The notes under the pieces were generated by a model, which did not search any database, was not told the DNA's origin, and saw only the letters and a list, made by a program, of their open reading frames with translations. Below are positions 1-64,000 of a DNA stretch of 64,000 nt, piece after piece. The position numbers and the translations under genes were made by a program. Origin of the DNA: Mytilus californianus (lineage: Eukaryota); contig NW_026262581.1 in NCBI RefSeq assembly GCF_021869535.1, positions 51,770,001 through 51,834,000 of the forward strand, written 5' to 3'. The first letter of the stretch is position 1; the number at the start of each line of letters is the position of its first letter.

Positions 1-2529
1 AAATTTATCGCCCACTAATATTTTTGCTGATATAGCCTTTAGTTTTCAACAAAAATTTCAATGGGCTAGGGGTGGCGTCACATATGAAATAAGGAAAAAA
101 GGTTGAAAAAATTAACAAATTTCTAGAAAAATGAACGAAAATGAAATATAATAATAATTATTCCTATTTAAGGCTAATGATATTTATAAGCATGAAGCAG
201 ATATACAGTTTTTCGTATCATACTTTCAAATACAAAAAGTTTTACTTTAATAATTGAAGATTAAAAAAACACCTTTACAGGGCAATTTATTGGGGTTCCT
301 GGCTCTTTAAGATCAGAATATCAAAAAATTAAGTGTCGTTAAGTATATTTAAGATTTCAGAAAAAAATCCCTTAAAAATTAAGGGCAGATAATCATATTG
401 AATTTGATAGGAAAATTTGTTTTAGGGGAGATTTTTCAAGAAAATAAGGCCCATGACTTTTTTCTATTTGATATTTCTTAAGTATAAATTTATGAAAAGC
501 AGTTCTCTCATTGAATTTCAATGTATTTTTACGAAGAAAACATAGTCCGTTACCCCCAGTTTTTACATTGAAATTTGAAAATACATTGACCTAGAAGAAT
601 TTAACATGAGTTTAAGAAAAATCAATCGTCGAACATTTAGACACCCTTAGTTCAATACCCCAGTAGAAAAGAAAAAAAACCCAAAACAACATTAGTTTTC
701 AAACTGAATGCAATGGCAAAAAAAAAACGATCAAAAGACAAACAACAGTATACAAAACACAACATAGAAAACTAAAACTGAGCAACACGAATCCCAACGA
801 AAAACTGGGGGTGATCTGAGGTTCTCCGGAAGGGTAAATAGTATAAAAAGGGGTCAATTCATTGTTTCGTTTAAAGTAGCATTTTTCAAGATCTTGTACT
901 GCTGATCATTACTGTTCTCAACTGTCCTTACAGCTTTCAAGTTAGTAAGCTCACTGTCTCATTGCAATCATACTAGTACCACATCTCTTTATTCTAGTAA
1001 ACTAGCTGAAATTGATCAAAAATCTACTTTTAAGGACAATAACACTTAAAAAGAGTCGTTGGGAAATTTTAGTACTAATAGAAAGGAAATAGATTTTGAT
1101 TTTCTAAATATTTGTGCTCATGTCTGTCAGATTTTTTGTATTTGTTATGGTTAGAAGTTATGAGAGTATTGTCTGAAGGTTACCCTTATGTTCTAGGAGC
1201 CATGTTGGTAAATGAGGCAATAACTTTTAATTAAGATACTATTAGATTAATCTTTTAAAGTTTTATTCAAATTGGTTCAGTAGTTCGAAGGAGGAAATCT
1301 CTGAATCTCTCGGACGACGGACGCAATGTGATAGCAAAAGCTCACACTAGCCCATTTCGGATGTGCATTATTACAATGACAAAATAGAAATCGTACTATC
1401 ATAAATATGAGAGGTAGCTGCGCTTATTGATAAATACTTGCCAATAAGCATGAATCGAACCGTGATTAAGTATGAATAAAAATAGATTTTGGGTATAGTT
1501 CAATGGAACAGCTACCCAACGTCACACAATATAAAAAAAATCTTTTAAAAGGAAAAAACTGTCTTTGCCAATGGACAAGGGTAAGTACAATATGTCAAGC
1601 ATATCTCATCTCCTTATTTTTATAACAGTGATAATGCAAGAAAGCTGTGAATGAATTTAACAGAGACTATTAAAGATCTATCAGTCACCAACACCAAATC
1701 CCTACACGAGAAGATTTGTTTTAATACAGTATATATACCTAGAGAATTTTATTTCCGAAAGGTTATATAGTATGTATACTAATAATAAATGTGATGAGTG
1801 CAATAAGTGTTCCTATGATTAACATCATCAGATATGCACAATGTGTTAACGCCAAAAGTTTGGAAAGTCAAATAGTACTTATGCTCAATTTGAATTTAAG
1901 GTTAAAAAAGAAAAGAAAAGAAATCATGATAGAAAAGCTCTGGAATATCGTATCAACTGGAGATCTATACTCCATATGCAGGCGCTGTTCGAATTTTGCT
2001 TCTCAGAAATGGAATATGTTTTGGCGTTAGCACATCATGCATATAACGATGTGAGGATAATAAATCGAATGCAATTATCTATTGTTTTTTTTAGTTTTAC
2101 TATTGATAAAGGCAGTATTTTTTTCTACAAACAATGATGTATAACTAAAATTGCGTTTAGATAGCAATTGTATTTCATATTTTTATTCTTTTTTTTAAGT
2201 TTGATGTCATCTTCTTAAGTGGCAACGGCAGAATATAACAGCTGACATGCATCGTCGTAAATAAAAAAAAATATAAATTTATAAAACTAGATATTATTAC
2301 CATGCTATGTAGAATCCAAATAAATCAACCATAAAATCAATGATTTAGTCATAGACTAATAAAAAATATTCATATCCTTACTAAAATGCTTCATATGAAA
2401 CGCTGGACTTCATGAAAGCTCTAAGCTGAATCGGTAAGGAAAGCAACGATGTTGAAAAGATGGTTGGGTTGATGGATATGTGTCTAACGTCCAGTGGCAA
2501 ATATTACATCCACATGAAGACGAGAACAT

Positions 2530-2790
2530 ATGATATGACTGCTTCTATCCCAACGAACCCATTGAAGTCTATCTTATATTTTGAATTATATCCAGAAATT
2601 GATATTGAGGTTTGGTTTAGAAATAAAATTTTAAATTTCGAAAATCGATATGATTTCAATTTTCTGATTGTGAACTTTCCATTTTTGAGAAGCAAAATTC
2701 CAACAGCGCCTGCATATGGAGTATAGATCTCCAGTTGATACGATATTCCAGGGATTTTCTATCATAATTTCCCTGATATATGCCTATAAC
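2530..2790 (+). mobile_element. Penelope-like retroelement RT C-terminal fragment (degenerate)
   Basis: Translation contains RYDFNFLIVNFPFLRSKIPTAPAYGV followed by a frameshifted SQLIRY-like segment, the conserved C-terminal RT block of invertebrate PLEs. Confidence 0.75.
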
Positions 2791-4189
2791 AACGAGGATA
2801 GTACTATTGCATCCAGCGTTCCAAGTGATTTAGAGGTGGTCATTCCTTCGAAAGTTTTATAAAATGTTGAATTATTCGAAACACTAAAGTTTTCTACCCC
2901 GAGTCATGGATTGCAGTAGTCGTTTAGGTAAACCTTTAAGAAATTTTTAGCTTTTAATACTCTTCAAATCAATGCTCAATCTTTGGTTTTCGGTGAAAAG
3001 CTTTGTTATCTTTGCTTTCGGAGTAGTTATCGTAGTTTTTTTACCACCATGATGTACTTTTTTTTAGTTCAAATTTGTTATGTTATTTTCATGGGCCTTT
3101 TTTCGTACACTTAAATATCGCATAGTCCTTCTGATAGCTGTTCCTACTGACCGATCAATTCTATAAAATCAAATATGATCTCGAATATACCTTACTTCTG
3201 ATGTATTTATGACTGTTCAGTAAAATATTCTTTTTACCGTACGTTGTGAAGAAGCTGTTGAAGTTAAAGTAGAAAAGTCAAAATCTTTATTATGCACTGT
3301 TAGGGTCTTTCCTTTGAATCTTGATTCAAACACAAACTCAGTAAGGTTAGATGTTTCGATTTCGAAGTAGGTGGAAAATTTACCACATAGTTTTGCTACA
3401 GGAAATCCAAAACACAATCTTTCATCAAAATTGGAAAGACTTTATAGCATGGATAGAGCTACATGTGTTAGAAAAAATGAAACACTAAGTGTTTGCGATA
3501 AAAATAGAACACATTCTATTACAAAAGGCATACACAAACATATGTCTAGCGCAATTTTGAGTCATCTCATATGATCTGGAATGGTGACATTTGCATACTA
3601 CACATCAGTCATACATAACTGGATTTGTCTTTCCATATTAGAACCTAGTAAAAAAAAATGGGATGTCAAAGAATTTCAAAATATTCTACGGATGGGAAAA
3701 TGTGGCACTGAAAAAGCATACAAAATGTAAATGCTAATAACCGCGAGGATGGTTTATGCCTGTAGACAAAATATGCTAAAATAAATGCGAAAACAATCGG
3801 TATAATCGAAAATACATCACTTTCGGTTTGGGCCAAGCGTTTTCCTGAAAATTTGTCAAATTAGTTCCTTTCGCCTTATAGAGTAGCATATAAAAACCAA
3901 CTTTAATAAGTTATATACACAAATTATTAAACATAGATTGTTCTAATATATCTACAAGTTTCTGTCGTACTCTCAAAAATGTTCCATTTCAATTATACAT
4001 ATCGACACTCTATAGATCTTTAATTTGTAATGTTAAATTGTGGTGGGTCTTTTTTTACATTTGCGATTGTACAACCCTCCTCCCAACCTGGAAAAGGAAA
4101 ACACAATACAAGAACACACTGTAAAAATCAGTTTGAAAGGTCTTGACTAATTAGATTGGTACTACGTGTATTCACAAAATGATATAACA

Positions 4190-6007: not shown

Positions 6008-8053
6008 TTAGATTTCAATGCAGCTTTTCATCGTGTGATCTCTGTAACGCGTTTGCTGATTGAATCCTTTTCCACATCTGTCACACGTGTATGGCTTGTA
6101 ACCGGTGTGTACTCTCTGGTGGATAGTCAGCTCATATCCAGTTAAAAACTTTTTATCACATGTATCACAGCTATACGGTTTAATGCCCGTATGTGTTCCT
6201 TGGTGTCGCTTCAATGCACCAGAATCTTGATAGCTCTTACCACACGTTTCGCACTTGTATGGCCTTTCACCAGTGTGTGTTCTCGTGTGTCTCTGTAACT
6301 GAGCGTTGCTTCCAAATGCTTTATCGCACGAACCACAAGGATAGGGTTTTTCACCATTATGGGTATTTTTAACGTGCCTTTGTAAATTACTAAGATGGGA
6401 AAATTTTCTGTTACATATTTCACATTCGTATGGAGTTTCGCCGGTATGTGTTCTCTTGTGTATTGTTAAAGCCCCATTTTCAGCAAAACTTTTACCACAT
6501 TCAGTACATTTAAAAGGTTTTTCACCAGTGTGTGTTCTCATGTGGCTTACAAAATGGTTTTTTAACCTAAAACGTTTGCCACAAGTTTCACAATCAAAAG
6601 CCTTATAATCAGAATGTATGTCCATGTGAGTAGTCAGGTTTCTTTTCGTAGTAAAGCCTTTACCACATGTGTCACAAGTATAGGGTTTCTCACCAGTATG
6701 TATTCTCATATGAGTAGACAGTTCTCCAGGAGAGTTAAATGTTTTATCGCACATATCGCACTTATGATATTTATTGCCCGTATGTATTTTCAAGTGTGTG
6801 TTTAGGTTACTGTTTTGTCTAAACGCCTTACCACACACCATGCATTTGAAGGGCTTCTCGTCAGTATGGGTCCTCATATGAATTGTGAGACAATTATTCT
6901 TCCTGAATCTTTTACCACATATATCACATTCATGTGGTTTATCATAACCAGTATGTGTTTCCATGTGTTCCTTCAAATTGCTGGAAAGCTTAAAACATCT
7001 ACCGCATATTTCACAACGAATTTTTTTCTCATCATTATGAGTGATCATGTGTTTTGTAAGATTTGCTTTATCTCTAAAGTTTTTACCACATGTAAGACAA
7101 CCATGTGTTTTTTCCTCAGTATGTATTTTCATGTGAGTTGTTAAATAGCTTTTTATCTTAAAACATTTACCACATATTGAACAGCAATATGGGTTCTTGT
7201 CACTATGTATCTTCTGGTGTTTTGCTAACTCACCTTTCGTAATAAATCTGCTAACACAAACAACACATTTATAAGGTCTAGTGGGTACCTCTGAATTGTG
7301 TATTCGCATATGGCTTTTCATGTTTGTATTATACGCAAAGCTTTTTCCACACACATTGCATTTATACGGTTTATCACCAGTATGTATTTTCATGTGATAC
7401 TTTAAACTAACTTTTTCTTTAAAACTTTTACCACATATCTCACAACTATGTGGTCGCTCCTCCGCGTGTGTTCTCATGTGTATTACCAGACAGTTGGGGT
7501 ATTTGAAGTCTTTACCACATGTGTTACAGCTGAATGGTCTCTTGTTACCATGTTTTCTTCTCATATGCTTTGTCAAATCACCTTTGTCTGTGAAACTTGT
7601 ACCACATACATCACAACGATGTTCTTTGATACCTTTATGTCTTTTCATATGAGACGAACGACTACTTGGCAAACTGAATGCTCTGCCGCAAATGTTACAA
7701 CTGTAAGGTTTTTCGCCACTGTGTACTCGTAGATGCTTTTTCAAGTCGCCTTTGTCAATAAAACGCTTATGGCATACTTCACATATGTGAGGCTTAAAAC
7801 CGACATGTCTTTTCATGTGTGTCTTCAGAGATTGTCCGGAATTAAAACTCTTGTTACACTTGACACAAGAGAATGGTTTGTCACTCGAATCAACTATTTT
7901 GGTTTCATTTTGCAGTCCTTTATATTCCGAAAAATCACTGGCCATAACATACTTTGCTTTTTCGTCCACGGCTTTTAGACTTTTTGCTATCGTGTCAATT
8001 TTATAGTTGAAAATGCTTTTCATTGTAATAAAATTTGGTTTCTCTATGTCCAT
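6008..8053 (-). CDS. Multi-C2H2 zinc-finger protein, copy A (intact, 681 aa; 21 C2H2 fingers plus a terminal C2HC-type finger)
   Basis: Uninterrupted ORF with repeated CxxC-x12-HxxxH motifs and TGEKP-type linkers. The ORF-track start at 8074 is TTG; the first ATG is at 8053, with an in-frame stop upstream. Acceptor-like tgtgtttcAG at 8125-8126. Confidence 0.93.
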   Translation of the reverse strand: MDIEKPNFITMKSIFNYKIDTIAKSLKAVDEKAKYVMASDFSEYKGLQNETKIVDSSDKPFSCVKCNKSFNSGQSLKTHMKRHVGFKPHICEVCHKRFIDKGDLKKHLRVHSGEKPYSCNICGRAFSLPSSRSSHMKRHKGIKEHRCDVCGTSFTDKGDLTKHMRRKHGNKRPFSCNTCGKDFKYPNCLVIHMRTHAEERPHSCEICGKSFKEKVSLKYHMKIHTGDKPYKCNVCGKSFAYNTNMKSHMRIHNSEVPTRPYKCVVCVSRFITKGELAKHQKIHSDKNPYCCSICGKCFKIKSYLTTHMKIHTEEKTHGCLTCGKNFRDKANLTKHMITHNDEKKIRCEICGRCFKLSSNLKEHMETHTGYDKPHECDICGKRFRKNNCLTIHMRTHTDEKPFKCMVCGKAFRQNSNLNTHLKIHTGNKYHKCDMCDKTFNSPGELSTHMRIHTGEKPYTCDTCGKGFTTKRNLTTHMDIHSDYKAFDCETCGKRFRLKNHFVSHMRTHTGEKPFKCTECGKSFAENGALTIHKRTHTGETPYECEICNRKFSHLSNLQRHVKNTHNGEKPYPCGSCDKAFGSNAQLQRHTRTHTGERPYKCETCGKSYQDSGALKRHQGTHTGIKPYSCDTCDKKFLTGYELTIHQRVHTGYKPYTCDRCGKGFNQQTRYRDHTMKSCIEI

Positions 8054-8559
8054 TTTCAGTAAAATCTTCTTCAATGCTCTTGTATTTCAATTGTTTAAAT
8101 GTACCTCCCGGTCATTATAATCTCCTGAAACACAGTTCAAAGTTATTCAGTAAAAGGAATATAAGTTTTCATTTCATTATTGGTCTAATGAATTATCAAA
8201 TCAAATTCAATTTCCTCGCAAGGATTTTGAGAAATCCAATTGTAACTAATGATCGATATTTAATATAAAAGCTATTACACAATAATATGATTGCAGAACG
8301 AGTGGGCATTAGTCGAAATTTAACGCATTTGTGGAATCGCTCGTAAGCCGTACAGTGTAAGATACAGATAATAATTATAATAGGTCACAAGAGAATTATT
8401 TATGATAGTCTGGACGTGAAAGTCTGCATTTCTATATTCCTTAATAATTTTAGGTTATATTCTTGTTTCACGTATATCTTAAAACGTTTTCATGATATTC
8501 TGAGATAAACACCCTAGCTATATAACTTACATTGTAAGTAACAATTAAATAGTGTAAAC

Positions 8560-9450: not shown

Positions 9451-10941
9451 GTTTAAGAGATAATGGTATTTCCCACTTTTTTTCAAATCTAACTCTCGCT
9501 GATCGTGACATGTATAACTAGGCAAATTAAGAAGAGCATTGATGAAAATGAGGTGTCATGAAATAGAAGTCCTTCATAATAAAAGTTCCAAAATGGAAGA
9601 ATTGTTCTGTAATATTATTTCTACTGGAATATTGTTCCTTACGGAATAAAGATTATAGATTTTTTTTTCCAAAAGGAACAGATATGGCATTGTTATAACA
9701 AAGCTTCCATAGGAACTGTTGCCAGGCGGAACAAACAAACGTTCACAGAGGAACATTGTTGAAATCATTTTAGACGATACTATTCAGCGTATCATCATGT
9801 TTATGGTAAAGAATAATTACATCTTAAATAAATTAAACTTGCACAGTACCAAATAAATTTCAATGGCTCTTTTCAATAATCCTGCGGAGTTCCTCTGGAA
9901 CTATCTTAGTCTAAGAAATCGATTTTACTATCGAAATAATATTTTGTGTCAAAGCATATGAAGTGTACATGTGATCTCACTGCAGTCAAGAGTTTTAAAA
10001 TTCAATTCAACTTAATCGCATATGAATTTGAAATTTTGAAATGTATTTAAATTGTTTATCATTCACATAAAGGTACTCACCAAAAGTCTGTATATATTGT
10101 CCTTATGGAATTTCGTAGCTCATATTTATTTGCAAAACATATACTTTCTTGCTTGTTGGATGGGAAATCTTTTCCTAATAGTGCACGGCTTTTTATGCAC
10201 AATGAAATTTTCAATGAAGATTTATTTATTATACTGGTAAAGGAATAACGAAGTGTACAACTGTCACCCTGAAGCAATATACGTATGAAAAATCCCGTCA
10301 AACATAAATTTATGAGTACTTATTGTCTAATTTTTACAATGAAATTGAAAAGAATATGAATTTGATTTATTGACAGATCCTTACACCCATTGGCAAAATT
10401 TTACAGATAATTTATTTTATTAAAGTGTCACCATCCAGTACAGTATCTATGTACACAAAGTCATAAGAACCTAACATTAAATAAAAGGATGCCAGACGAA
10501 AACGACTCATGAGACACTATCATGAAAACAGACATCTAATACATACACAAAAAGACAACAATTTTACATGTGAAAAGTATTTCGTAAATAAAATATATAT
10601 ATATAAAGATATGATTTAGCCCAACAATGTTAGATCTGCAAATTACCATGCCGACACATCAAATTTTAAAATAATTATTTATAAATTCTAGATTACTAAT
10701 AACGTCAATGATCTCTCGGTCGTTTATATCATCCACGTTTTGTATGTAATCTTGCTCACTCCCGCATCATATTCTATTACATGCATATTCATGACGAAAA
10801 ACTAAGTAGTGTCATCTGAATATATTATACTGGAGTGAAATATCTCGGTTAATCCTACAAATTCATTGGTTACCTAAACAGGGGATGTGGGCTCATATCC
10901 ACTGTTTTGGTAGCCAATCAAGAAAGTAAAACAAAGATAAT

Positions 10942-11542
10942 AAACAGCTACGCAATGAGCGCATGATACGCCCGTCGCTTTTTCAAATAATAAAGTTCAA
11001 TAACTTCTCAATGTTATATCAGAAATTTATGAAAAACTAAAGGGAGGTTATCTTAATAGATATAAACCAGTCACCAAAGCACTTTGAAGATATTGTCCGA
11101 AAACTGGAAAATCACCCATTTTTTTATGAATAAAATCCCATAACTCGGAAAGGTAAATTCTAAAATTTATATAAAAATCGAAAGGGAGCTCACATCAATA
11201 GATATAAACAATTCACCAAAGTTCTTGCAAATTGGTGAAAGTGTTTTCGAGTTATTGTCCGAAAACTGGAAAATCCCCCTTTTTAATGAATAAAACCCCA
11301 TAACTCGGAAACGTAAAATCTAAAATTTATAAAGACGAAAGGGAGCTCACGTCAATAGATATAAACACTTCATCAAAGTTTCAAGCAAATTGGTTAAAGC
11401 GTTTTTGAGTTATTATCCGACATGTTGACGACGGACGGACAGACGGAAGGACGGACGGACGGACGGATGAACGGACGGACGGACGGATGGACGGACGGAC
11501 AACGGTATACCATAATACGTCCCGTAAACGGGCGTATGAAAA
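10942..11542 (-). mobile_element. HINE-type non-autonomous Helentron with about 160-bp central repeats and (GACG)n microsatellite
   Basis: Subterminal inverted repeat atacgcccgt (10966-10975) / acgggcgtat (11528-11537), terminal hairpins, about 2.5 central repeats (gtccgaaaactgg recurs about 162 bp apart), microsatellite at about 11425-11500. Confidence 0.8.
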
Positions 11543-20084: not shown

Positions 20085-22050
<1,966 letters not shown>

Positions 22051-22057
22051 TTTTTTT

Positions 22058-22201
22058 TCATAAATTGTAATCCTGCCTTTTTTTTTGCAAAGTTGCTCAT
22101 CCTGCCTTTTTTTTACTCAAAACTCCTGTCCTGCCTTTTCACAAATTTCATCCTAGCCCCCCCCCCCCCCCCCCCCCCCTAAAATTAAAATGGTAGCTCC
22201 C
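22058..22201. mobile_element. Half copy of the Harbinger-like MITE at the 5' truncation point of ZF copy B
   Basis: Matches the right part of the 45966-46854 element (tcctgcc repeats, catcctagccccc, aaatggtagctccc|TTA). The left TIR is absent. Confidence 0.7.
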
Positions 22202-30692: not shown

Positions 30693-31904
30693 TCAGATTT
30701 CAATTCAGTTTTTCTTCATGTGATCTCTGTAACGTGTTTGCTGAGTAAACCCTTTTCCACATCTTTCGCACGTGTATGGCTTGTCACCGATGTGTACTCT
30801 CTGGTGGATGGTAAGCTCATACTTAGTTAAAAACTTTTTATCACACACACCACAGCTATACGGTTTAATGCCCGTATGTGTTCACTTCAATCCACCAGAA
30901 TCTGCATATCTCTTACCACACGTATCGCACCCATAGGGCCTTTCACCAGTGTGTGATCTCATGTGTCTTTGTAACTGAGCTTTGTCTCCGAAAGGGCCTA
31001 TCACCATTGTGTGTCTTTTTAATGTGTCTTTGTAAATTACTTAAGACGGAAAACTTTTTGTCACATATATCACATTTGTATGGAGTTTCACCCGTATGTG
31101 TTCTCGTATGTATTGTTAAAGACCCATTTTCAGCAAAGCTTTTACCACATTTGGTACATTTATACGGTTTTTCACCTGTGTGTATTCTCATGTGACTTAC
31201 AAAATTATTTTTTAATCTAAAACTTTTACCACAAGTTTCACAATCAAAAGCCTTATAATCTGGATGTCTGCCCACATGTTTAGTCAGGCGATTTTTATGA
31301 GTAAAACCTTTACCACATGTATCACAAGTATAGGGTTTCTCACCAGTATGTATTCTCATATGAGAAGTCAATTCTCCCGGAGAATTATATGTTTTATCGC
31401 ACACATCGCAATTATGATTTTTATTGCCCGTATGAATTTTCAAGTGTGTGTTCAGGTTACTGCTTTGTCTAAACGCCTTACCACACACCATGTATTTGAA
31501 GGGCTTCTCGTCAGTATGGGTCCTCATATGAATTGTGAGACAATTATTCTTCCTGAATCTTTTACCACATATATCACATTCATGTGCACGTGGTTTATCA
31601 TATAAACCAGTATGTGTTTCCATGTGTTCCTTCAAATTGATGGATATTTCACAACGATATTTTTTCTCAACACTATGAATTCTGTTGTGTTTTGTAAGAT
31701 TTCCTTTATCTATTAAGTTTTTACCACATGTAGGACATCCGTGTGTTTTTTCCTCAGTATGTGTTTTCACGTGAATTGTTAAATTGTTTTTCATCTTAAA
31801 ACATTTACCACATATTGAACAGCAATATTGGTTCTTGTCACTATGAATCTTCATATGTTTAATTAGGTCACCTGCACATCCACTACAACTATGTGGTCTA
31901 GTAT
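30693..31904 (-). pseudogene. ZF copy C, 3' part (fingers about 8-22)
   Basis: Paralogous to copy A. Deletion and frameshift after NGDRP, partial finger deletions, and a premature TGA replacing the terminal Cys ([12 protein letters not shown]). Confidence 0.9.
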
Positions 31905-32421
31905 GGAAAGCGGCAACCGGGGTCAAAATTCTTAATTCGTAAATTGTCAATTTGTAACTTGTAACTGTGAAATTTTCAAAATTCTTAATTCGTAAATGGT
32001 CAACTTGTTACTTGTAACTGTGAAATTTCAAAATTCTTAATTCGTTATATGTCAATTTGTAACTTGTATCTTTGTAATTTAAAATTCTTAATTAATTTCG
32101 TAAATTGTCAATTTGTAACTTGTAACTGTGCAATTTCAAAATTCTTTATTCGTAAATTGTCAATTTGTATATTGATGTTTTGTAACTTGAAACATGTCGA
32201 TTCGTTAAATGTCATCGTTGTATTATGTTAACGATCATTATGACGACGGATGGCGCTCGGTTTCTTTTTCTGTATATAAGCCTCCTGTAAGTAGGAGCAT
32301 CTCCGTATGGAGTATATACCCTTAGTAATTTAAATCAATTATGTACAGCACATACATATAAAAGAAAACAAACAGAAATTTTTTATTTTTATATGGCATG
32401 TATACAGGAACCAGGTTTTAT
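31905..32421 (+). repeat. Left TIR with about 52-bp internal tandem units
   Basis: About 5 copies of aaattcttaattcgtaaattgtcaatttgtaacttgtaactgtgaaatttc, then unique sequence matching the right arm. Confidence 0.85.
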
Positions 32422-50244: not shown

Positions 50245-50407
50245 ATGACTTTTAGAGCAGCTGGATCCAAAGTTCATTTGTTGATTAATAAGAGTAGCAT
50301 TCCTTGGTATATAAAAATGGCAGCTCCTACCAGTGTAAGATTTCTCCATGAAAAGGCATATGTAAATGGAAAATGGGCAGATGCTGCAAGTGGCAAAACA
50401 TTTGATG
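50245..50407 (+). CDS. ALDH5A1: Succinate-semialdehyde dehydrogenase, first coding exon
   Basis: Acceptor ttttgttttccAG at 50234-50235; ATG 50245 (MTFRAAGSKVHLLINKSSIPWYIK) in frame with ATG 50317 (MAAPTSVRFLHEKAYVNGKWADAASGKTFD); donor GTTGGT at 50408. Confidence 0.85.
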
Positions 50408-51654: not shown

Positions 51655-51869
51655 TTACATTATATGTTCTATTTTTAATCCATGTAGCCATGTCAATAGA
51701 CAGAAAAGAAAATGATTCAAAAACTGAAATCTAGGGAGATACACTATAAGGATCAATTATGTCAATTTTGGTTTAAAGGAGAAGTTATGAAAAGGCCACT
51801 TTTTTTGCACCTTGAAATTCAGAAATCAAAATTATTATTAATTCTGGGCTACTGTTTTACAATTTGCAG

Positions 51870-51991
51870 TGGTCAATCCTTCCAATGGGAAAAAGATTGG
51901 TGTTGTACCAGACATGGATGCTGCAGACACACAGAATGCTATACAATTTGCTCAGACTGCTTTTGAATCATGGAAGGAAACAACAGCCAAG
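51870..51991 (+). CDS. ALDH5A1: SSADH exon 2
   Basis: tttgcAG|...VVNPSNGKKIGVVPDMDAADTQNAIQFAQTAFESWKETTAK|GT; phase consistent with exon 1. Confidence 0.95.
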
Positions 51992-52448
51992 GTATAGATA
52001 ATTGTAAAAAATCTAGTAATTTTGGTTGGGAATCAAAGTTTAAAAATACTACAAAATGAAAACTTTATTCTCAAGTATATGTCTATAAAATGATAAACCA
52101 CGAACATATTTTGACACGTAAAACTGCAAATATTTTTATGCCGCAAATTTTAATACTCATAACACATACTGAGAGTTAATTTCTATTCATAGTGATCTTT
52201 GGCAGTGCCAATAACAGTACATTTCCTTTTCAATATTTCCATACAAGAAAACACTAAAGTTTAAATATAAATAATTGAACAATAGTATGGATAAATGGTA
52301 AAGCCTAAAGACACAATATATATTGTCAGTTATGCAAGTACAAAATAACATTAATGTATACATATTTTTTCTTGTGTAAGTTTTAAAATTTCTGCTCCTC
52401 TATTCATGTCTGACAGATAATTTTATTTCTTTTTTTTCTCAATTTCAG

Positions 52449-52532
52449 GAAAGAAGTGTCATATTGAGAAAATGGAGCGAGCTCTGTATAGAGAATAAAG
52501 ATGAGCTTGCAAAGATACTAACACTTGAAAAT
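52449..52532 (+). CDS. ALDH5A1: SSADH exon 3
   Basis: tttcAG|ERSVILRKWSELCIENKDELAKILTLEN|GTAAGA; 84 bp. Confidence 0.95.
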
Positions 52533-58192: not shown

Positions 58193-58303
58193 TTAAATCT
58201 GTATTTACTCTTTAACTGTTTGTTTTAAAGGCTTAAAGTATTTATAATCTTAACTATCATAGCTACTGAGACTTTGTAAAATTATTTTATATCTGTTTAA
58301 CAG

Positions 58304-58474
58304 GGAAAACCTTTAGCTGAAGCTACAGGAGAGGTCATGTATGGTACATCATTTATGGAATGGTTTGCCGAGGAGGCAAGGAGGGTTTATGGGGATATTA
58401 TTCCATCGCCTGCGAAGACAAAGAAGATCCTTGTACTCAAACAACCAATTGGAGTAGCTGGTATGATTACACCT
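58304..58474 (+). CDS. ALDH5A1: SSADH exon 4
   Basis: aacAG|[57 protein letters not shown]|GTGAGT; 171 bp. Confidence 0.97.
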
Positions 58475-58879: not shown

Positions 58880-58996
58880 TGGAATTTTCCTAATGCCATG
58901 ATTACCAGGAAAGCTTGTGCAGCTATAGCTGCAGGATGTACTGTTGTTCTCAAACCAGCTGAAGATACACCATATTCTGCTTTGGCATTGTGTGAG
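58880..58996 (+). CDS. ALDH5A1: SSADH exon 5
   Basis: ttgcAG|[39 protein letters not shown]|GT; ALDH WNFP and KPAE motifs with the SSADH-typical MITRK. Confidence 0.97.
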
Positions 58997-60129
58997 GTAT
59001 TATATAGAAACTTGATATACTGAGAACTCATTTAATTTCGTAGATACCAATTTTTGTGGATGGAGGGAAAACTACATACCAGTATTCATGAATGTTTGAT
59101 TTTCATGATTTTGCCAGTCTGCATACAGGCCTATAAAAAGTTTCAGCTTCATTGGGACATTTACATTCCTGGTTTACCCATGAATTCCATGAAAAATTGG
59201 TATCTCATGAATATGGTAATAATAAAACCACAGTAAAGAGATAGAAAAAATTACAAAAAGATGAAATATAAGTTAAAAAAGAGGCAGAAGATACCAAAGA
59301 GACAATCAAAACTCATTGGTGGAAGAGAAACAGACAAAACTGATGTAAAGAAGGAAGGAAGAAAGACATCATATAAATTTGACCTCAGTTTTGATACTGA
59401 GATCTGAAAAATTGTGGTCTACCTAGAAGTTTTATTTCATCTTTCATAGGGGAGGGGAAGGGTGTTGTTCTTGAATTACAATGAATGTTTACAAAACAAA
59501 ATATTTTTGTAACTTTAAAGTAATTTGCACATAATCCTCAACATTGTTTCTGGTTACAAGCCTGCCAAGTACTGATTTAATAAGAAGGAGATAATACAAT
59601 GCTATTCAGTTTCAATTTTTCAAAAGTTATTAATATGAACTCATGTACAAGCACAAAAATAAATAACAGAGCTAACATTTGCTAGAGTTGGCCGTACAGT
59701 TGCCTATAATTGCTTACATCCACTTCATTTGAACTTGGGTGGATAGTTGTCTCATTAGCAATCATACCACATCTCTTGTAACTTATGCAGAGTATAAGTG
59801 TTGTTTATTCAGACAGGATGGTTTCCTCCATGAGATGGGGCAGTCGATTCCATTATAAGGTCAAAGGTCATGCCTAATTTGGTCTGTCTGATATCAAGGA
59901 TTAGGTTCTCAGATTACAATTGCAGGCTGCCAGCTTCTCACTTTTGATTTTGCTGTTGAATACAAAGGACCTTTACTCAATAGGAATAAGTTTTCAATTT
60001 CACCCACCATCCACCCCAATCTACCACCTTCAATATTTCACTGAATGTGGGAACAGTTCTCAGCAACCCAGTGGTGTTTTATAAATAAATGACCATTACG
60101 AAATTCACCACTGGTTAATTTCTCTTCTT

Positions 60130-60291: not shown

Positions 60292-61504
60292 CGCTTCATC
60301 CCCTTTTGGAACCCTCTGTGTTCCAGTTGATTGGCGGAGTGTCCATGTCCACGGGGCTTGGCTACCCACTATACCAAGTGTCGTCCACAGGGCCTGGAGC
60401 AAAATTTTCCCAGCTGAGATACTGACTCCCAAAGGGCAAACTTATATTAAATGTATATAATAAAAGTAAAACTTTATCAAGCCTTTGTTATCAACAGCCT
60501 TATCAATTTGTCAAAGTACTTGCGTCAGGTTAAGTCATTTGTCTGGTTCTGGTTTTTATATGGTCAGTAATTGTGGTTCTTCATCTTAAAGACAAGTTGA
60601 GAGACTGTAGCGTTTGGTCCCATGTTGTATATACATTTACATGTTTATGTTGAGTATAATTTGGCACCAGCTGTTCCAGGGTTAAAGAGCAACACTTGAA
60701 GAAACTATTATATAAGAGGATCTCCAAATTTAAGTTCCAGGTCTTGAGGTAATCATAAAGCACAGTAGTATCCAGGATCACATACAATTTGTTAGGGGCG
60801 TCACTTGGCATTCGTCGTCTCCTATGTGCTTACATGTCATGTAGGTCTCAAGTCATCACTTGGCATCCGTCTATCAATATTACTTAAGCTGTCATTTTCC
60901 TCCAGGACGAAAGTATAAACTTATTTTTATATCAGTTGAGTTTAATGTGTTGATCTTAAAAAATGTAAAAATGGTAACTATATATTTAAAACATAAAATA
61001 GCTAGAAAAAGTTATTCAACCTTATGTCTTGGAGACTTGTTAATGAAATGAATTGCATTCAAAACCTTATGAGTGAAATAGAAACCTGATGTGAAAATGA
61101 TAAAGAAATTTAAACCAAAAAAGGAATTCACTGAAAGCATTGTGTCCAGCTGTCTTGTTAATGACAGCTCTTTTATGATTTTTTCCAAGTTACACATAAA
61201 GTTCATATTTCATATCATTTAGGTCAAAAATAAAATTTGAATTGTTAAAATGTTACCTATCTACCCACCTAAAAGCAGCCTACCTGAAAAATTTAATGGC
61301 ACAAATCGTTTCAAATTTTTTTTTAAAGATTCTTTCCTGCTCTTACATAGCTTTCTTGTCTAAAACATGTAACTAATGTTGTTGGCCAAAAAAATGAAAT
61401 AAAACCCCTACCTACCTACCCAACCCTACAAGTCATGGGTAGGCAACATCAAACATGGATTTTTTTAAGGGTGGTCTTACTTTTAATATACCAATCCATT
61501 TCAG

Positions 61505-61648
61505 TTAGCTGAGAAGGCTGGCCTTCCTCCAGGAGTGTTGAATATAGTCACATGCTCAAGAGCCAATGCAGGAGTGGTGGGCAAGATGTTATGTGAAAAT
61601 CCAATGGTTAAAAAGATTTCCTTTACTGGTTCTACTGTTGTAGGCAAG
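61505..61648 (+). CDS. ALDH5A1: SSADH exon 6 (gene continues beyond the window)
   Basis: tttcAG|[48 protein letters not shown]|GT; FTGST NAD-binding motif. No ELGG catalytic exon seen before 64000. Confidence 0.97.
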
Positions 61649-62571
61649 GTAGTATCTATATAAATAACATATTCAATTGTATTGATCTCACTGTTCAGGG
61701 AGTCAATACAATGTATTTCTCTAATTTTCATGCTTTTTTTACATTTTTCGATCGATGTGAGACAAATATTTCTCATCTCTAGAGAAAACTTTGTTCTCAG
61801 CAAATGATTGGTCGAAATTCAATTATGACGTCAAATTTTCATGGTTTCTTATGAATTTCATATAGAGTTATGCCCTATAAATAATGAAGAATTTAGATAG
61901 AATTCAATTGAGGTTGGATATTATAAACAAAACAAAAACAAAATTGTTAGTGATATTCAAGCAGATCTATAAAAGAATTTCTTTTAAAAATTTACATTAA
62001 AATACAAGTTATTGACTGTGGATTCATTACTATTTTTGTATAATATATTTTATTTCTTCTAAAAATGTCTTTACCAAAGGATTGTTGATAAACTCTTTCT
62101 TATTTTAAGATATCCATGTAATGTTTTTGGTGGAGAGTATCTATGTGTGAAATTATTGTCATATCTTGTTGATTGTGACCACTTCTGAAACAATAGTCAT
62201 ATTTTTTTTTTTTGCATTTTATATTTTCTTGTTTTCTTGTACATTAAGTATATCTTTTTTTTCTTGTTGATTGTGACCACTTTTGGACCAATAGATATTT
62301 TTATTTTGTTTGTATTTTTATATTTTCTTTAAGTCAAAAAATGAGTAAGAAATAATAGAATTATAATTATTTATTAGCATGTGACATATTAAAAACATCA
62401 ATTTCAGTATAATACATAATAAAACAATTAAAGCAATAAATCTCAAAGCACTTTCAGTTAACAAGTATAAGTTTTTAGCACATAAGACAGACAAATGATA
62501 ATTCATAGCACTTAGTAAACGACAATAGTTCATAGCACTTAGGACAAACAAGTTCATAGTAATGTTGATAT

Positions 62572-62922
62572 TCAGTATGGCTGGTAGTAGGAGTTCCCGT
62601 TGTAGCGTGAAGACATCTTACGAGAGGTGATGACTGTACGTGAGTGGGTGTTCTGTGAACGGCTACGTTTGTTGGCAAACCATTTCTTGACCTGTTCTTC
62701 TCTGATGTTCCCCTGAAGTGCAATAGACTGGATGATGGTTGAGTCTGGGTATGGGTGGTCTATGTTGCAGTGGTACCATTCTTCCATGAGCTGGATGGAC
62801 CTACGTGAGAGCTGTGGACGAGAGCGGACATTACATGGTCTGGTAGTTGGAATCTTGGTAGTAGTATGGGTACTGGTGTGTGTCTGGTCAGTGACTGATT
62901 GTTGGAGGTTCTTGACACTGAG
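62572..62922 (-). CDS. PADRE/SPILE-type TALE homeobox gene, exon 2 (homeodomain)
   Basis: ttttacAG acceptor at 62923-62924; RSRPQLSRRSIQLMEEWYHCNIDHPYPDSTIIQSIALQGNIREEQVKKWFANKRSR has the TALE PYP loop and WFANKR helix 3; TGA at 62572-62574. Confidence 0.92.
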   Translation of the reverse strand, partial: LSVKNLQQSVTDQTHTSTHTTTKIPTTRPCNVRSRPQLSRRSIQLMEEWYHCNIDHPYPDSTIIQSIALQGNIREEQVKKWFANKRSRSQNTHSRTVITSRKMSSRYNGNSYYQPY

Positions 62923-63193
62923 CTGTAAAATAAATAATATAATGAATAAAAACATATATATTCATTTTAACAAAACATAGAAAAAATTACTCCTGTTATT
63001 TGACTCAATTAAATACACATCATAACTCTATTTTTCATTTGAATAAAAAATGTGCACCATTGAAACATTTTTCATTATTTTAAACCAGAATTCATTCCTT
63101 TTTTTTTATTCTATTTCATTATTCAATTCAAATGAAAGAAATCTTTTTTTTTTGTATTTTTAATTGACTCCATAATAATATTGGATGTTTTAC

Positions 63194-63826
63194 CTCAACC
63201 CTATCTATAGCCTTGTGTATTTGCTCATCAAAGTTGTTGTTGATGGAGACTCGTAGATGTGGTTTGGTAGCATTCTGGTGAAGTGACTGGTAACGCTCTG
63301 TCTCGATTACAGCAGACTGGTACTTGAAGAAGCTGGATAACTGAGACACCTGAGTTGGGTAGTTGACTTCAAGTTTGGTAAACTGACATTGAAGTTGTTG
63401 CTCTCTGGTGAATACACTGGTTTTGGGTTTGTGTAGTAGCTTCATCAGAGTCTCTGGTATGGTTTGCTGTTTGAGTTCTGTCTTGAGTAGTGACTGTAGT
63501 TCTAGGACTGCTGAGTTGTTGCTGAGTAGTTGCTCTGGTGGTGGAGATCCAAGAAGATCAAAGAGTGAGTCAGCAAGGCGAGTTTCTGTCTCAGGCTCAA
63601 GAGCTGTTGCTTCTGCAAGGATAGCAGCAGCCAGGGCCTCATCATCATCTTCGGTGGTGTTGGTAAGATCAGCAGTAGAAGTGGTACCAGTTGATTCAGT
63701 AGAGTTAGTGGTGTCTGGTTGAATAGTAGCAGCAATGATGTCCTCTAGTGTGGTAGTAGATGTGATCTCTATGGGTAGTGGTGACTTGGTAGGTGATGAC
63801 ATCAGGAAGTCAAGAAAATCAGCCAT
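63194..63826 (-). CDS. PADRE/SPILE-type TALE homeobox gene, exon 1 (acidic Thr-rich N-terminus plus PADRE-like domain)
   Basis: acaatcATGg start at 63826; 633 bp; QLSSFFKYQSAVIETERYQSLH...NNNFDEQIHKAIDRVE|GTAAAA donor; phase-0 join to LSVKNLQQS gives a 327-aa protein. Confidence 0.88.
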
Positions 63827-63889
63827 GATTGTAGTAATTGATAAGTAATAGTACAATGATTGATCGAGATTGGTAGTTGATAAGTGAAT

Positions 63890-63976
63890 AATGATTTGTC
63901 TCAATAGTGACATGCTTAAATATGGTGTCACATGTGCCATGTTCGGCTTATGGTGTAAACACTGGATTTTCATTGG
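63890..63976 (-). promoter_or_regulatory. Putative core promoter of the TALE homeobox gene
   Basis: On the minus strand: Inr-like TCATT (+1 about 63892), TATA-like TATTTAA at -30 (63916-63922), CCAAT at about -80 (63972-63976). Confidence 0.55.
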
Positions 63977-64000
63977 TTGAAAATAATAGTGAACTTTAAT

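Follow-up and report, generated by a model that had tools for sequence, protein, structure and literature searches.

A SPILE A/C-clade PADRE-TALE homeobox gene of the mussel Mytilus californianus, very likely nested antisense in an intron of the SSADH gene

SPILE genes (Morino et al. 2017) belong to the small number of lineage-specific regulators with a link to the spiral-cleavage programme, and their duplication in bivalves is the proposed basis of early D-quadrant specification. Members of the B clade have two homeodomains, and those of the E clade are without PADRE (Table 1 of PMC8524836), a conserved region of ~87-90 amino acids (aa) located N-terminal to the homeodomain (Paps et al. 2015; PMC5322547). 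Two Mytilus coruscus proteins, CAC5423385.1 and CAC5423386.1, were listed as SPILE A/C-clade by Phuangphong et al. (2021, PMC8524836) in their survey of that species' genome, the former (Mc_CAC5423385_1 in their supplement) on the basis of homeodomain trees that included bilaterian TALE genes; the intronic location of the two was not reported. The closest relatives with expression data, MvSPILE-7 and MvSPILE-8, belong to a different genus (Mytilisepta virgata) and are specific to the D blastomere from the 4-cell stage, within a clade whose zygotic expression sets in at the 4-16-cell stages, a pattern known from M. virgata and limpet genes (PMC8524836). Here, we analysed 64,000 nucleotides of the Mytilus californianus genome (RefSeq assembly GCF_021869535.1, contig NW_026262581.1, positions 51,770,001 to 51,834,000; hereafter the window, to which all coordinates refer unless another locus is named) and describe a PADRE-TALE gene on its minus strand (62572-63826), which consists of 2 exons and encodes 327 aa in a frame that is clean throughout. 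Judged by its sequence, this is a SPILE A/C-clade PADRE-TALE homeobox gene of the MvSPILE-7/8 subgroup. It is genuine and intact, and it is also ordinary for its family, its M. coruscus counterpart having already been catalogued in 2021. We consider it likely that the gene is functional and self-contained, that it lies antisense in an SSADH intron, where it was duplicated at the DNA level, and that it has an early role in the D quadrant.

The first-pass annotation of the window had described a two-exon, 327-aa gene on the minus strand with the motifs HPYP, WFANKRSR, YQSAVIETER and IDRVE; its coordinates proved exact, and all of the motifs are present (Table 1). With exon 1 alone as query, Mytilus homologues appeared at E-values of 1e-103 to 1e-111 and 83-91% identity, alongside further mytilid sequences and oyster PADRE proteins (~1e-19 to 1e-23), which puts the gene far beyond chance. 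Over its whole length, the predicted 327-aa protein can be aligned with 11 full-length relatives from mussels to oysters, and both the position of the intron and its GTTGAG/GTAA donor are conserved in 4 annotated Mytilus homologues. The gene had also been called complete, which is true of the coding sequence, of the AATAAA signal and of 174 base pairs (bp) upstream of the ATG, all of which are inside the window; the remaining promoter lies beyond the window end. Two further in-frame ATGs, at 63973 and 63940, were ruled out as starts, since the homologues begin at MADFLDF and both ATGs fall inside the conserved promoter-like block. The otherwise disordered N-terminus (residues 1-137, 63826-63416) contains short motifs that are conserved from oysters to mussels, namely TTLEDIIAATI (residues 24-35, a predicted helix), an acidic DDDEALAAAILAEA helix and RLADSLFDLLGSPPPE. 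An Rfam scan of 61000-64000 gave no match.

Comparison with the described relatives places the window gene as follows. Like it, MvSPILE-7 begins with MADFLDFL(LSS...) and carries the PADRE block SFFKYQ[SA]AVIETERYQSLHQ...IDRVE, and the MvSPILE-7 transcriptome contig (supplement of PMC8524836) reads ...IDRVEVSVDVLQQ straight across the DRVE junction. By eye, the homeodomain of the window gene is ~81% identical to that of MvSPILE-8 and 74% identical to that of MvSPILE-7; the better BLAST match of MvSPILE-7, however, is a paralogue in a CCDC162 intron (P0011) and not the window gene, and one-to-one orthology is not implied. The M. coruscus pair (CAC5423385.1, P0002; CAC5423386.1, P0001) has the same position in the SSADH intron, the same strand relation, the same two-exon structure and the same intron after DRVE, with an exon 1 that is 83-91% identical to that of the window gene. 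Flanking DNA is ~90% identical between the two loci, compared with 76-79% in flank comparisons with M. galloprovincialis. M. coruscus has two tandem copies, one of them frameshifted, whereas a single copy is visible in the window. The oyster PADRE-TALE genes (Crassostrea gigas K1RAG1, P0020, and Saccostrea cucullata LOC134280434, P0018) have the TTLEDII motif, PADRE, a single TALE homeodomain and a length of ~320 aa in common with the window gene, but their identity to it is 37-39% in exon 1 and ~52% in the homeodomain; moreover, the Saccostrea gene is intronless and lies on the same strand within a PXK-like gene, whereas the window gene has one intron and is antisense to SSADH. Oyster PADRE-domain TALE genes are reportedly assigned to TALE clades VI/VII (Paps et al. 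2015).

The claimed TALE homeodomain is borne out, on exon 2, by Pfam (Homeobox_KN, 4.3e-10, profile positions 1-40 of 40; Homeodomain, 2e-09) and by an alignment to PBX1 and Extradenticle (Exd) that runs ungapped through ...HPYP..., i.e., through the three-residue TALE loop. The WFxNxR recognition helix is present as WFANKR (homeodomain residues 48-53), and position 50 is Ala, compared with Gly in PBX1. All 63 residues of the homeodomain are identical to those of Mc_CAC5423385_1 (63/63); homeodomain-only trees cannot separate two identical homeodomains, which puts the window gene in the SPILE A/C clade and upholds the SPILE membership proposed in the first-pass annotation. This placement is by identity, our own trees being confined to PADRE-TALE relatives, with no canonical TALE outgroups. 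A single homeodomain combined with a single PADRE is likewise the domain count of the A/C clade. It is extremely improbable that the gene is instead a divergent member of a canonical TALE family (PBX, Meis/Pknox, Irx, TGIF or Mkx). Such an origin is hinted at by the solved structures closest to the homeodomain, which are PBX1 and Extradenticle, and by the UniProt name of the oyster relative K1RAG1, 'Pre-B-cell leukemia transcription factor 4', but the structure matches are weak (E ~1e-6, 31 bits), exon 1 gives no Pfam hit to a PBC or MEINOX (Meis_PKNOX_N) domain at E up to 1, and the gene carries PADRE, which defines mollusc-specific clades (PMC5322547). For its part, the identical M. coruscus homeodomain had come out in the SPILE A/C clade when bilaterian TALE genes were part of the tree. 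What the SPILE gene of the window has in common with PBX/Extradenticle, MEIS/PKNOX and TGIF is the homeodomain fold with the three-residue loop extension, the predicted fold matching Exd, PKNOX1, MEIS1 and TGIF1 with Foldseek template modelling (TM) scores of 0.75-0.90 (target side). Because this fold is the same, the mode of DNA binding is probably that of the canonical TALE proteins, although sequence similarity to them is weak and PADRE stands in place of PBC or MEINOX.

The block upstream of the homeodomain had been matched to PADRE, and this identification is correct: residues ~138-226 align with oyster and other bivalve proteins in a position N-terminal to the homeodomain, and in C. gigas K1RAG1 the aligned block starts with the literal letters PADRE. 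Searched with a profile of the N-terminus and PADRE, 1.84 billion representatives yielded only 147 clusters at E up to 1e-3. The xPYP and WFxNxR pair follows downstream in 106 of the 144 proteins checked, many of the remainder being short, and every named member in the sample comes from a bivalve (Mytilus, Pinctada, Dreissena and Argopecten). When 73 PADRE segments were compared with Pfam, no family was matched beyond chance-level hits to unrelated families, which also speaks against a canonical TALE affiliation; at the sequence level, PADRE is a distinct family. In the AlphaFold2 model of the M. coruscus orthologue, the domain reaches a predicted local distance difference test score (pLDDT) of 94-98 within the full-length protein, and 90 when modelled alone, with a predicted TM score (pTM) of 0.77. 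The fold predicted with this high confidence is an antiparallel three-helix bundle. Fold searches with the domain returned generic helical bundles only (best Z 9.3, below the meaningful level for helical folds; Foldseek E >1), and we suppose that PADRE is probably a protein-interaction module.

The host gene is represented in the window by six SSADH exon segments, which tblastn with Escherichia coli GabD detects on the plus strand upstream of the TALE gene. The term 'exon 6' for the last of these is a count of detected exons, and a presequence exon may lie further upstream. For each of the three exons tested, the best family is TIGR01780 (SSADH), and when the 58-aa exon at 58301-58474, alone among the exons, was compared with solved structures, human mitochondrial SSADH (2W8N/2W8P) ranked first. 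As the first-pass annotation had noted, the catalytic ELGG exon does not appear before the window end: tblastn with GabD finds no exon for residues 240 onward, and the E[LM]GG motif is absent from all plus frames of 61649-64000. Nesting as such, which the same annotation had asserted, is therefore not visible in the window; its support comes from the M. coruscus contig L003, which contains both P0001 and P0002 and has SSADH exons on both sides of them. This contig is collinear with the window up to the window end; identity is 89-95% across the intron and exons of SSADH and ~82% across the TALE gene. Along it, the exon for residues 194-239 is followed by two antisense TALE genes, then by the ELGG exon (residues 241-287) and three further SSADH exons; the four remaining detected exons (residues 241-481) thus lie past the TALE genes in the correct order and on the correct strand. 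In the M. coruscus annotation, SSADH appears as two separate models, one on each side of the TALE genes. From this arrangement we infer that the M. californianus gene, too, is very likely nested antisense in the intron that precedes the ELGG exon of SSADH (ALDH5A1-type). If SSADH were instead truncated or rearranged, with the TALE gene merely downstream of a partial copy, a window that holds only the 5' half of SSADH, to GabD residue 239, would look as it does. Such a truncation is nonetheless most unlikely, given the M. coruscus exons beyond the TALE genes, the collinearity right to the window end and the state of the SSADH exons in the window, which are open and highly conserved.

Nested positions recur among the relatives of the gene. 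The closest, P0003 of M. californianus (L002 10001-11228) and P0004 of M. galloprovincialis (L004 10001-11254), share the strand of the PX-kinase-WH2 (PXK-like) gene that encloses them. P0011 and P0008, a pair less closely related and the one that matches MvSPILE-7 best, are nested in CCDC162 in antisense orientation; as with SSADH, this host gene is divided around the nested paralogue in the M. coruscus annotation. In Saccostrea cucullata, two intronless PADRE-TALE genes (L008 ~2290-3170 and 10001-10957) occupy a PXK-like gene, again on the same strand. All of the PXK-located genes lie upstream of the terminal proline-rich/WH2 exon, and the Saccostrea version of this exon aligns with its Mytilus counterpart. 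A DNA tree rooted on the CCDC162 copies has the topology ((Mcal_PXK, Mgal_PXK) 99/97, (window, (McorA, McorB) 95/97) 93/96). Since the intron was retained, the SSADH copy appears as a DNA-level duplicate of a 1.5-3 kb unit. The suggestion that the gene is a recent duplicate is thus right as to duplication, but 'recent' applies only in a relative sense, because the tree puts the event before the split of M. californianus and M. galloprovincialis; as for the two tandem copies of M. coruscus, either they are younger or they have been homogenised. The PXK-like site is probably the ancestral home, as sister copies are found there in mussels and two PADRE-TALE genes in an oyster. In the 2021 supplement (PMC8524836), CgTALE12 matches PXK-like models, which suggests fused gene models. 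The M. edulis protein CAG2221955.1 (P0040, 392 aa), which carries the database name 'PXK', is in fact a PADRE-TALE homeodomain protein, and the name probably came via a model fused with, or adjoining, the PXK host gene.

Is the window copy functional, as had been concluded from its clean frame and splice sites? Both are indeed intact, and several further features point the same way. Compared with its positional orthologue in M. coruscus (P0002), the ratio of non-synonymous to synonymous substitution rates (dN/dS) is 0.27 for the whole gene, with 0.40 for the N-terminus and 0.19 for PADRE, at a dS of 0.11-0.16; all 4 changes within the homeodomain are synonymous and none is non-synonymous. Upstream of the ATG, ~300 bp are conserved by BLAST between the SSADH-intron and PXK-intron copies, that is, between copies in different host genes, in agreement with the earlier proposal that the duplicate brought its own promoter. 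When the upstream region of the window gene is aligned with those of the two M. coruscus genes and of the M. californianus and M. galloprovincialis genes in PXK introns, two CCAAT boxes, CACATGTG and a TATA-like element lie within the aligned block. Purifying selection, together with the conserved intron position and the conserved promoter-proximal sequence, argues for function. At the other end of the gene, the 3' untranslated regions (UTRs) of all 7 paralogues examined (those of the window, L002, L003, L004, L006 and L007) contain 2-4 (A/T)(A/T)GTGCT motifs, often as AAGTGCTAT, within divergent flanks. In the window, these motifs are partly within a 27-bp tandem repeat (62498-62559), and they may constitute an element of post-transcriptional control.

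Several points weigh against a functional gene with the location and role outlined above. The public collection that we searched holds no identical protein and no spliced transcript for the window copy. M. coruscus tandem copy A (CAC5423386.1, L003 10001-11218) has a deletion and a frameshift between the normal start of exon 2 and the homeodomain, and in its annotated model, splicing to an acceptor further downstream costs the homeodomain its N-terminal arm; either decay of this copy or a fault in the assembly may be the cause, and members of this small cluster can therefore decay. The MvSPILE-7 transcriptome contig extends upstream of the homologous TATA-like element, so that the transcription start is uncertain and we have not adopted a TATA-based one. 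The expected expression pattern is borrowed from a different genus, Mytilisepta. Finally, the window ends at 64000, before the catalytic exon, and only upstream SSADH exons are visible in it. The missing protein and transcript and the frameshifted copy A, which annotators bypassed via the downstream acceptor, would also suit an intact-looking but silent duplicate that was copied into the SSADH intron, is neither expressed nor needed and is heading to pseudogene, as would the several redundant paralogues of the subfamily. We regard this fate as quite unlikely: selection has held the protein at the dN/dS values given above, down to 0 in the homeodomain, the frame, both splice sites, AATAAA and the upstream elements are all intact, and expression limited to cleavage stages would account for the absence from public transcript data. 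Since no identical protein was found, the gene may also be missing from the current annotation. Logan fragments P0005-P0013 were considered as transcript evidence but set aside, since each is an exon-1 reading frame that continues into the intron.

The functional nested gene that we favour would work along the following lines. It would encode a 327-aa spiralian-specific TALE homeodomain transcription factor, in which a predicted disordered, acidic and Ser/Thr-rich N-terminus with short conserved motifs is followed by PADRE and then by the putative DNA-binding TALE homeodomain of 63 aa. Within the SSADH intron, it would carry its own conserved promoter-proximal sequence and its own polyadenylation signal, having presumably arrived by duplication of the 1.5-3 kb unit at the DNA level, with sister copies in a PXK-like intron, an arrangement also seen in oysters. 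By analogy with MvSPILE-7/8, zygotic transcription would be expected from the 4-cell stage in the D quadrant, where the protein would help to specify blastomere fate.

For the SPILE family, the window copy represents one more intact member, now with its genomic location. All close relatives that we examined lie inside introns of unrelated genes, and these intronic homes of the subgroup, above all the PXK site of oysters and mussels, are the new elements of this analysis, not found in the literature searched. The PXK-like location, being common to oysters and mussels, is a possible synteny anchor for orthology where homeodomain trees are poorly supported. A broader reading, which we put forward tentatively and think rather doubtful, is that genes of the MvSPILE-7/8 type spread as small autonomous units of 1.5-3 kb, each comprising promoter, two exons and UTR, and that they are retained specifically in introns of larger genes, with the PXK-like home just upstream of the last WH2 exon kept since before the divergence of oysters and mussels, and the SSADH and CCDC162 introns as later landing sites. 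Were this true, host-intron synteny would provide an orthology framework of a kind that homeodomain trees cannot give for a fast-evolving family, and the intronic setting might matter for very early zygotic activation.

Table 1. Features of the PADRE-TALE gene, its SSADH host and related loci. Positions are those of the window unless a locus (L002-L008) is given.
Feature	Position	Strand	Basis
Start codon ATG	63826-63824	-	Translation
Exon 1, coding part, 211 codons: acidic/Ser-Thr-rich N-terminal region and most of PADRE	63194-63826	-	Translation; homologues at 1e-111 to 1e-19; MADFLDFL start common to mussel homologues and MvSPILE-7
Intron, 271 bp, GT...AG, phase 0, after ...IDRVE; donor GT 63193-63192, acceptor AG 62924-62923	62923-63193	-	Splice sites; position and donor as in 4 annotated Mytilus homologues
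Exon 2, coding part, 116 codons and TGA (62574-62572): end of PADRE, linker, homeodomain, C-terminal tail	62572-62922	-	Translation; Pfam Homeobox_KN 4.3e-10
PADRE domain, residues ~138-226, split by the intron; predicted antiparallel three-helix bundle	62878-63415	-	Alignments; AlphaFold2 model of the domain of the M. coruscus orthologue
TALE homeodomain, 63 aa, residues 242-304, HPYP in loop, WFANKR (Ala50)	62644-62832	-	Identity to Mc_CAC5423385_1; alignment to PBX1/Exd
3' UTR, lower end approximate; four (A/T)(A/T)GTGCT motifs (3 = AAGTGCT); AATAAA 62375-62370	62350-62571	-	Sequence check
Candidate promoter-proximal elements: CCAAT (63976-63972), CACATGTG (63936-63929), TATA-like TATTTAAG (63922-63915)	63915-63976	-	Upstream alignment of paralogues
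Upstream SSADH exons (tblastn extents)	50341-50406, 51869-51991, 52446-52529, 58301-58474, 58880-59008	+	tblastn with GabD
Last SSADH exon in the window, GabD-equivalent residues ~194-239, AG acceptor and GT donor; TALE gene in next intron (very likely)	61505-61648	+	tblastn with GabD; splice sites; TIGR01780 2e-15
CCDC162-nested MvSPILE-7-like paralogue (P0011, P0008)	L006 10001-11233 (M. coruscus), L007 10001-11268 (M. galloprovincialis)	Antisense to CCDC162	
Terminal proline-rich/WH2 exon of PXK-like gene	L002 19265-19529, L004 19766-20023, L008 13936-14202		

Two other parts of the window deserve mention. A short element in an SSADH intron (59699-59775) recurs with 77-89% identity at a number of unrelated sites within the M. 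galloprovincialis and M. californianus loci and is probably a small interspersed repeat. Upstream of SSADH, on the minus strand, long C2H2 zinc-finger open reading frames with up to 18 fingers (6008-8074, 20203-22100 and 30943-31950) form a small gene cluster; a protein search with a 688-aa C2H2 zinc-finger reading frame of the window was dominated by vertebrate zinc-finger proteins.

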